From positions 186,001 to 250,000 of the forward strand of contig NW_026926547.1 in NCBI RefSeq assembly GCF_032062105.1: 64,000 bases of DNA. Reading direction: 5' to 3'. The position numbers were made by a program, and so were the translations under genes. Below the pieces are notes generated by a model. That model ran no database searches. It was given only the letters and a program-made list of their open reading frames with translations, and had not been told where the DNA came from. Below, one piece after another: positions 16,001-19,000 of the stretch (positions within the stretch are counted from its first letter, which is position 1; every line of letters begins with the position of its first letter). The stretch comes from Saccostrea cucullata. Taxonomy: Eukaryota.

Positions 16001-19000
16001 TCTGACGGATTGTACATTAGCTTAAATCTGATGTTATCTTTAGAATGGATTGATTTGTACGATGTTTGATATATTTTTGTCTAACTGAATATTCATGTAA
16101 ATTTCTACTTTTAGTTTATGGAGGCATTACTTTTCTCGGGATATCCTGCACTGTCAGCCTGTCTGACTACCTGGGCCATTGCCACTTTTGTTCCTCTTGT
16201 ATATGTGCCATTTATTTTACTTTTTATAGGGTAAGTTACTGCACACATGAAAGCATAGAAGTTATCTCACATTCTGAGAAAATTGATTTATATGGAAATA
16301 AGTTAAGGTTATTACCTCATCTGTAGTTACATGTATATATCCGACAAAGACATTTAAAAATACAGTTATTAAACCTTGTTATTTCGAACTCAATGAGGCT
16401 AAGAAAAAATTTCAAAATATCCGAGGATTCGAGATACTGAGGGTGAAATACTTAAAGAATAAATGGTTGAGACTTCAAAATCAATTCAACATTTCCATGG
16501 TTTTGAACAGATCAGTGTTTGGGATACAGAAATTCAACTTTAAAAATATCAAAAGTCTACAATTTGAATCGGATTAAAAAAAAAAACTTTTAAAAACAAG
16601 GAATTCCATGCATGTACGCAAAATAATCTTTCTGCATAATTTGAAGATCTTTCTACTGCTTTTATCTATATTTTCAGGTTTGTTTTATTTCAAGTCTTCA
16701 TGACACCAACCACCTCCTCCTTCAAACTGAACCTGAAGGATCACAAGGAGGATGTCAATATCCTTAACAACAGACTCATTGCTGCCATGGCAACAGGATT
16801 TTGTTTACTTCCTGTTTTTCTTCAGATTCTCATTGCTCTGTATCAGAGAGGGTTTCACGGAGTTTTTCACTTCGGATTCTTTGTACGTAATATAAGTACC
16901 AGTAATTCTGAGATGAACTTTTTTCAATTTTTATATATGTAAACCTGTGTGACTTTTGTCACAGTATCAAAAAGCCTTCATGTATATGTGATTGTCCTTT
17001 AGATTACATCACAAAAAAACAACAAATTACAAATGGTTTTAATGTGGCACTTAAAAGGCCAGACATACACACAAAAGGTTGATGTGATAGACAATAGAGT
17101 TCATATGATGCATCCTAAACTTTATTTGCATATGTAGACTCATGATCTATTTTTTTTATTAAATTCCAGTGTGAGTTACTGTTCCTGTTGTGTTTGGCCG
17201 TGTTTCTGATGACTTTGATGAGTATAAGACACATTGTGGAAGTTGTAGGTATGAAGATATAATCATCATTTTTCATCAGACACTATACTTTTCCACAGAA
17301 AAGAAACCTTAAGATACAGTCTGCTTCAAACAGAATTCTGAATTTCTTTAAACACTTTGCAATCTTGTTTGCAAGAGTGTAAGAGACAAATATATGATAT
17401 TCTCATCCAGTTTTAAATTTGAAGTAAATTTATGTAATTTTTCACACATGAAATTATGATTAAATCTTGACATGATTGCTGTGCAAATATTAAATACTTT
17501 GCAATAAGGAGACAGTCATATTTATGTGTAGGCCATGATTATCCTTTTGAAAATATGATTAGAGTCTGTTATGTGATATTTTTCTTCTCATGATTTCCGC
17601 ATTTAAACAGAGGCATAGATAAAAGTACACTTCTCTTCAATTTTCCATACATTTATTAAAACAGGTTTCCAGTACAGCCTGGTGATCCAGTTACGCAGTC
17701 TGTGTGGGGGTGTGGCAGCCTTCCTGTCTTACCCAGTGTTCCTAGAGCTGGGCGTGACATCACACTTCCTGTCATGGCTGCCATTTGCTGTGGGAGTGTA
17801 TGCTGTATATGGAACACTGCTTAGTTATAAGAAACTCAAGGTTTGTAGCAAAAAATATCAAGAGTTAATTATTAAATGTAGACTGAAACATAAAGTTTTT
17901 GCATTGCCTTTGAAATCTCCTCTAAAAGAGGTAGTTTTCGTCAATGTCATGGAATTTTGAACAATAATTTTTGGTACTTGTTTGTGCCAATGAGTCATTT
18001 TATCATGTTTATTCACAAGAAATAGCGGTTTAACTACAGTGTCTTTTATTTCTTTTACAGTTCGTCTCCACAGTGTTCTTTGTGGTAGCTGTGATTTTGT
18101 CTCTGGTGTGGGCAATTAAATTGCCATGGAAATTATCATATCCTTTATACAATTTCTTACAAACAGTGTATACCATACACATAATGTAGATTCCTAAATA
18201 TATGCATGGAATGAATTATTGCATAATTTTACGAGAAGTACCGCACGCTATCTAAGATTTCTCACCTTTATTTTTATGGTGCTGAAATCGATGCTAAATC
18301 TCTTGATCAACGGTCCAGTTGAAAATTATCATTCTTGCGATTTGACATTGAAGATCTCTTTCATGATGATAAGTACTCATAAAAATAAGGAATCAACAGT
18401 ACATGGTACACATTTGATGGACATTTCTCAATATAAGGTTATGTATAGAATAACATACAATGTGCAAATACAACAAAACTTGTCTAATATGGACACCACT
18501 GATTCCATGAAAAAAAAAATTGGTAAAGCACAGTGTATACAATTGACTTTATCTAAAGTAACTAAAAGTTTTCATTGTAATAGACAAAATGTCAGGTTAC
18601 ACCAAATCCAGACATGTTTATATTATATTATATCGTTAGTTAATTGTGTTAAGTATACACAAATGTATATATGTTTTGCAAATAAACTTAATAAAGGGTA
18701 TTTGCAAAAACTTAACATAACTCTAGACTCCTCGGGTTTTGAAAAAAAAATTCTTTTACCTTTATAAGCTTCATGTATGTCTCCTTAACTCTATGTTACC
18801 TATACCTTTATGTTCGGGATATCGCTGAAGCTGATATTCTGTCTGATGATAGCTAACTCTGTGCTGTGTCTGACGGCTGTACATCTCTCTTCTCACGGAT
18901 CCCAGGCAGCCTTCAGTCTCCTAGTGGTGTTACAGACCATTGGTAGGTGGTGGTTATAGCTCAATGAGAGTAAAATGTATACTTCTTTACTAGTCAAATG

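Follow-up and report, generated by a model that had tools for sequence, protein, structure and literature searches.

A probable U12-type AT-AC intron in an uncharacterized membrane-protein gene of the oyster Saccostrea cucullata, with orthologues in three phyla

Nucleotides 18138 to 18799 on the plus strand of a 64,000-nucleotide stretch of the Saccostrea cucullata genome (the whole of which is here referred to as the window) very probably form an AT-AC intron of the U12 type, whose removal we infer to depend on the minor spliceosome. The original prediction had placed such an intron between coding exons 9 and 10 in phase 2, and it is supported by the splice signals, by RNA at the level of assembled contigs, by four minor snRNA genes, and by U12-type orthologues in three phyla. 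The intron is a new instance of a well-known class and leaves knowledge of minor splicing unchanged. It settles how a conserved but little-studied membrane-protein gene should be modeled and shows that, in oysters, this gene carries a minor intron. Its orthologues also offer, in compact form, a natural example of U12 intron evolution: within one gene the ends are GT-AG, AT-AG, or AT-AC, the intron has been precisely lost in Pinctada and is absent from a starfish, and the 5' site is weakened in Capitella.

Host gene and splice signals

The DNA of the window is of animal origin and AT-rich (GC about 0.32). Its host gene lies at 13092 to 24079 (+) and comprises about 19 coding exons for a multi-pass membrane protein of ~965 amino acids from an uncharacterized animal family, as established by exon-by-exon tblastn with Ostrea edulis protein P0059 and Saccostrea echinata protein P0093 and by spliced RNA joints. 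All of the window exons are open and collinear with the orthologues, and among the proteins found, that of S. echinata is the closest (67 to 100% identity per exon, mostly 87 to 100%). We searched for the family with the last exon alone (23660 to 24076, 139 amino acids) and compared the remaining exons one by one. The last-exon search returned proteins of about 930 to 1130 amino acids (typically about 950) from bivalves, gastropods, a cuttlefish, annelids, a brachiopod, and starfish, all of the named ones "uncharacterized" or "hypothetical" save for one stray label. No vertebrate member was among the matches listed in these limited searches, and Pfam assigned no family to any of ten translated exons or of seven relatives scanned at full length. 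Side copies of the gene were also seen: a tandem copy of the last exon at 26117 to 26737, lying 2.3 kb past the stop codon and degraded (79% identity, interrupted by in-frame stops), additional broken copies on other contigs, and, in O. edulis, an adjacent paralogue of 654 amino acids (LOC125674968). Elsewhere in the window are an open frame of 554 amino acids at 38490 to 40151 (+) with Cys/His-rich B-box-like motifs (CKDCRKNFCLLCKEKH...), unrelated to the intron, and a run of 138 N at about 35365 to 35505, which is an assembly gap or a masked stretch.

Read from the window sequence, the intron is 662 nt long, in phase 2, and begins ATATCCTTTATA. Its 5' splice site, ATATCCTTT (18138 to 18146, +), is the sole match in the window to the minor-spliceosome consensus RTATCCTTT and agrees with RTATCCTT from intron position +1. 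The branch-point sequence TCCTTAAC (18782 to 18789, +) agrees with TCCTTRAY, and its presumed branch A, at 18788, lies 11 nt from exon 10, where about 10 to 20 nt would be asked for. A spacer of 8 nt (tctatgtt) separates it from the terminal AC at 18798 to 18799, which pairs with the AT at 18138 to 18139. No polypyrimidine tract precedes that AC, in contrast to nine neighboring introns, which end in long pyrimidine runs and YAG; the other introns of the host gene have ordinary GTAAG or GTATG 5' sites and pyrimidine-rich YAG ends. An interspersed repeat of ~220 bp (18182 to 18402) sits inside the intron, separate from the splicing signals; genome-wide, the scored copies (40 matches of 1340 candidates) are 80 to 82% identical to it.

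On either side, coding exon 9 (18061 to 18137, +, 77 nt) encodes FVSTVFFVVAVILSLVWAIKLPWKL plus the TC of a Ser codon, and coding exon 10 (18800 to 18942, +, 143 nt) supplies the C of that codon, YTFMFGISLKLIFCLMIANSVLCLTAVHLSSHGSQAAFSLLVVLQTI, and a final G; the numbering of these exons in the original prediction agrees with our homology-based exon map. Exon 9 is entered through an RNA joint, 17840^18061, with GT..AG ends and is 93% identical to P0059 residues 372 to 400. Exon 10 has RNA depth, is joined to exon 11 at about 19241, and is 86 to 92% identical to P0059 and P0093. The end of exon 9, ...AAA TTA TC (18137), and the start of exon 10, C TAT ACC (18800), make up the split codon TC|C for Ser. 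Because C18137 equals C18799, the cut could shift one base to the left, and 18136^18799 is equally possible; among the possible placements, only the AT-AC one fits a known splice class.

This genome encodes a complete set of minor snRNAs. Over its 1.17 Gb, the genes for U12 (123.9 bits), U11 (104.8 bits), U6atac (93.2 bits), and U4atac (87.5 bits) all score above their Rfam cutoffs, and an Rfam scan of the window itself gave no match. The intron TCCTTT (positions +4 to +9) is complementary to U11 nt 3 to 8 (AAAGGG) and also to U6atac nt 11 to 16 (AAAGGA). At the branch site, TCCTTA pairs with U12 nt 19 to 24 (TAAGGA) and CTC with nt 16 to 18 (GAG), with a bulged A between. Following the established mechanism, the U11/U12 di-snRNP would bind first, U11 with TCCTTT at the 5' site and U12 with TCCTTA-A-CTC, bulging A18788. 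U4atac/U6atac.U5 would then join and U6atac would displace U11 at the 5' site, so that cleavage at 18137|18138 and 18799|18800 would yield ...AAATTATC|CTATACC....

RNA support and competing readings

We mapped two runs of raw RNA reads, along with two sets of contigs, onto 16600 to 22500. The original prediction had called for RNA across 18137^18800, and the join is read by contigs of run X2. The first contig runs through exon 9 and continues as ACCTTTATGTTTGGG, matching exon 10 from position 18804 onward except for a single silent variant; the second spans exon 10 and, before 18799, opens with TGGAAATTAT from the end of exon 9. The two overlap by 30 letters, as neighboring k=31 unitigs do, and jointly read TGGAAATTATC|CTATACC (also given as TGGAAATTATC|CTATACCTTTATG). 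Removal at the intron borders is therefore seen at contig level, in two contigs of one run. Raw-read joints were listed only when carried by at least 3 reads, and depth at exons 9 and 10 is ~1, so that this joint is unlisted. The RNA status of X2 is a guess by the mapping tool; we take the run to be spliced RNA because it has six GT-AG joints of the host gene and no depth over most intron bins.

Nine neighboring introns have joints, eight of them listed as GT..AG and one (exon 10 to 11) as TG..TC, 18940 to 19239, which we read as a GT-AG intron at 18943 to 19240 whose joint was shifted by a variant close by. A loose end in the mapped RNA gives a tenth boundary, 22355^22634. Reads from other copies of the repeat map on 18182 to 18402, where they show misfit joints (18293 to 18381) and, at 18401, loose ends; the joints from 18289/18293 to 18381 were accordingly rejected as splicing within the intron and attributed to those other copies.

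The motifs might be coincidental, with the true transcript using another splice pair or exons 9 and 10 not being joined as proposed, a reading that we regard as scarcely credible. It draws on the unlisted raw-read joint and on base composition, since each motif alone is to be expected by chance in 64 kb: the RTATCCTTT 9-mer occurs once in the window (2.5 expected) and the TCCTTAAC 8-mer six times (2.1 expected). A motif alone is indeed insufficient, because the look-alike ATATCCTTAAC in coding exon 6 (16758 to 16768), which holds 5'-site-like and branch-site-like strings, is read through unspliced by the RNA contigs. Neither motif is thus unusual by itself, but their arrangement is beyond chance. 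Both motifs and the AC sit where the reading frame and orthologue collinearity require, and the joint chance of the 9-mer, an 8-mer within the allowed distance, and an AC at the frame-fixed places is about 1e-10 given base composition. The joined sequence in RNA contigs stands against coincidence as well, as do the collinear orthologues and the intronless Pinctada gene, which yields the same peptide. The claim that no GT-AG pair joins exons 9 and 10 cleanly also holds: in a local check of the two-exon frame, every in-frame GT-AG pair uses the AG at 18830 inside exon 10 and deletes the conserved residues YTFMFGISLK. None that keeps these residues was found, and alternative GT-AG pairs for this join were ruled out on that ground.

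It is very improbable that the AT-AC intron is real but removed by the major spliceosome. Rare U2-type AT-AC introns are established, and a 5' site of that kind would have AT followed by a U1-like AAGT rather than ATATCCTTT. The perfect TCCTTAAC 11 nt from the 3' end, with no polypyrimidine tract, also argues against U2-type removal, as does the presence of GTATCCTT and TCCTTGAC in orthologous introns with GT-AG ends. The assembly holds a second copy of the locus (G000:C20009:46800-49200, L020; last exon at C20009:63309-63725), which is a haplotype left uncollapsed or else a duplicate of recent origin. Its identity to the window is 96.5% across the upstream sequence and the initial ~530 nt of the intron, falling to 88.6%; its last exon is 99% identical and lies at a larger distance. 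If the window copy were a silent duplicate or haplotig and contig C20009 the source of the RNA, the gene would still have a real intron, but with its splicing unsupported at this locus. All mapped reads are 95 to 99% alike to the window, not identical, which would suit that reading. We nevertheless give it very little credence, given that the window exons are all open and collinear with orthologues and that both copies have identical AT-AC splice signals, despite a 200-nt difference in intron length. Because the signals are identical, the nature of the intron does not depend on which copy is expressed.

Orthologous introns

We compared the gene DNA of eleven orthologues, locating the site in each species through its own protein. 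Every orthologous intron found is in phase 2 and lies directly 3' of "..LPW.L", and the distance from the branch A to the 3' end is 9 to 12 nt in every species that has the intron. AT-AC ends are common to oysters and a scallop: besides the window intron, they occur in the C20009 copy (868 nt, 5' site ATATCCTTT, branch site TCCTTAAC), in O. edulis (430 nt, ATATCCTTT, ACCTTAAC), and in Pecten maximus (343 nt, ATATCCTTT, TCCTTAAC). GT-AG ends are found in Mactra antiquata (902 nt, GTATCCTTT, TCTTTAAC), Haliotis rufescens (802 nt, GTATCCTTC, TCCTTGAT), Patella vulgata (460 nt, GTATCCTTG, TTCTTGAC), Owenia fusiformis (194 nt, GTATCCTTT, TCCTTGAC), and Lingula anatina (264 nt, GTATCCTTT, TCCTTGAC). 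Capitella teleta also has GT-AG ends (72 nt), with a weaker 5' site, GTATCTTGT, and with TCCTTGAC followed at 9 nt by AG. Orthologues with GT-AG ends carry GTATCCTT and TCCTTGAC, not U2-type signals.

Biomphalaria glabrata (L015:5880-6277) has an AT-AG intron of 395 nt with 5' site ATATCCTAC and branch site TCCTTAAC. AT-AG is a non-canonical end pair of minor introns, its 5' end being that of the AT-AC subtype and its 3' end that of the GT-AG subtype.

The comparison of intron position and type that the original prediction proposed thus returned the same site, phase, and U12 type in nine other species, eight of them with clear signals and Capitella with the weaker 5' site. The two remaining species, Pinctada imbricata (L011:16583-16795) and the starfish Acanthaster planci (L017:4576-4626), have no intron at this site, and their exon 9 and 10 equivalents are fused. 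Pinctada encodes an uninterrupted LPWRLSYTFLFG, the same peptide as the product of the AT-AC junction, and coding continuity over exons 9 and 10 is thereby fixed independently. P0059 of O. edulis is collinear over the junction (398 being the last full exon 9 codon, 399 the split codon, and 400 the first exon 10 codon), and the orthologue proteins gain or lose zero residues there. DNA identity between the window and O. edulis is 79% for exons 9 and 10 but only 47% over the aligned intron as a whole, in which the spacing, the 9-mer at the 5' site, and all but one of the eight branch-site bases are nevertheless kept.

On these data, the intron was already present before molluscs, annelids, and brachiopods diverged and has changed its end subtype since. 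GT-AG ends are probably ancestral because they are the most widespread state among the orthologues. Pinctada, placed here among bivalves with AT-AC ends, has lost the intron precisely; in Acanthaster, it was either lost or never present. The statement that the gene is old in its lineage is borne out as regards the intron, which molluscs, annelids, and a brachiopod have in common.

It had also been suggested that automated annotation may have split or truncated the gene and so hidden its homology. This does not apply to most public orthologue models: the intron is crossed correctly in those from nine genera (Ostrea, Saccostrea, Pecten, Haliotis, Patella, Biomphalaria, Lingula, Owenia, and Mactra). 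The orthologues stay "uncharacterized" for want of a Pfam domain or any studied member in the family, not because of truncation. The suggestion is apt for Capitella, a concrete case of annotation failing at a minor intron. Its model ELU08054.1 (KB299377.1, L018:2060-2430) is garbled exactly at the orthologous minor-type intron, skipping the exon 9 equivalent that encodes ...VVYLPWSI (L018, about 2136 to 2217) and reading exon 10 in the wrong frame.

Relation to NEF1 and to known minor introns

The original prediction called the host gene NEF1-like, a label that here has alignment-free matches behind it. In feature searches of the ESM Atlas, the clusters nearest to the oyster protein were two named "No exine formation 1" (0.84 and 0.83), and the starfish protein, which is 22% identical to that of the oyster, was likewise nearest to two NEF1 clusters (0.83 and 0.81); these scores are alignment-free, and values of <0.9 are rated as leads only. 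Word-index searches with a 13-member profile and with the starfish protein, in which candidates were capped at 8000, returned only close relatives among the matches listed, and no plant protein was among the matches listed from these or from the last-exon search. A fold search of the Atlas with a model of the C-terminal 208 amino acids (pLDDT 72) found only generic helical membrane proteins at TM < 0.5. No paper on both At5g13390 and U12 came up in a literature search. The oyster family resembles plant NO EXINE FORMATION 1 (NEF1) in size and in its nearest Atlas clusters by language-model features; the Pfam scan gave no shared family, and the alignment-based searches had no plant protein among the matches listed. 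On the alignment-free Atlas matches, we regard the family as a fairly likely candidate relative of NEF1.

Should plant NEF1 and the animal family prove homologous, plants or non-bilaterian animals might likewise have a U12-type intron after the "..LPW.L" codon, an extension that we consider unlikely. Were it true, this would join the few minor introns that can be followed back to an ancestor shared by plants and animals. Human-anchored comparisons would have missed such an intron because no vertebrate member was among the matches listed.

Well-known examples of U12-type AT-AC introns are intron F of human NOP2/P120 and the AT-AC introns of sodium-channel genes. These have the same 5' site, ATATCCTT, and TCCTTAAC about 11 nt before a terminal AC. 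The oyster intron is like them in having no polypyrimidine tract, in its non-zero phase, in its old and conserved position, and in being a single minor intron among many GT-AG introns. Unlike them, it sits in an uncharacterized invertebrate membrane-protein gene, which, with no vertebrate member among the matches listed, comparisons built around human genes would overlook.

U12 introns reportedly switch between subtypes, their end dinucleotides changing and their U12 identity staying, as Burge, Padgett and Sharp are said to have described in 1998. The GT-AG subtype is represented at this very site by the orthologous introns of Mactra, Haliotis, Patella, Owenia, and Lingula, whereas the window intron is AT-AC and that of Biomphalaria mixes both end types. 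Minor introns are comparatively numerous in molluscs and Lingula, are mostly of the GT-AG subtype, and avoid phase 0 (PMC10639083). The oyster intron fits this picture.
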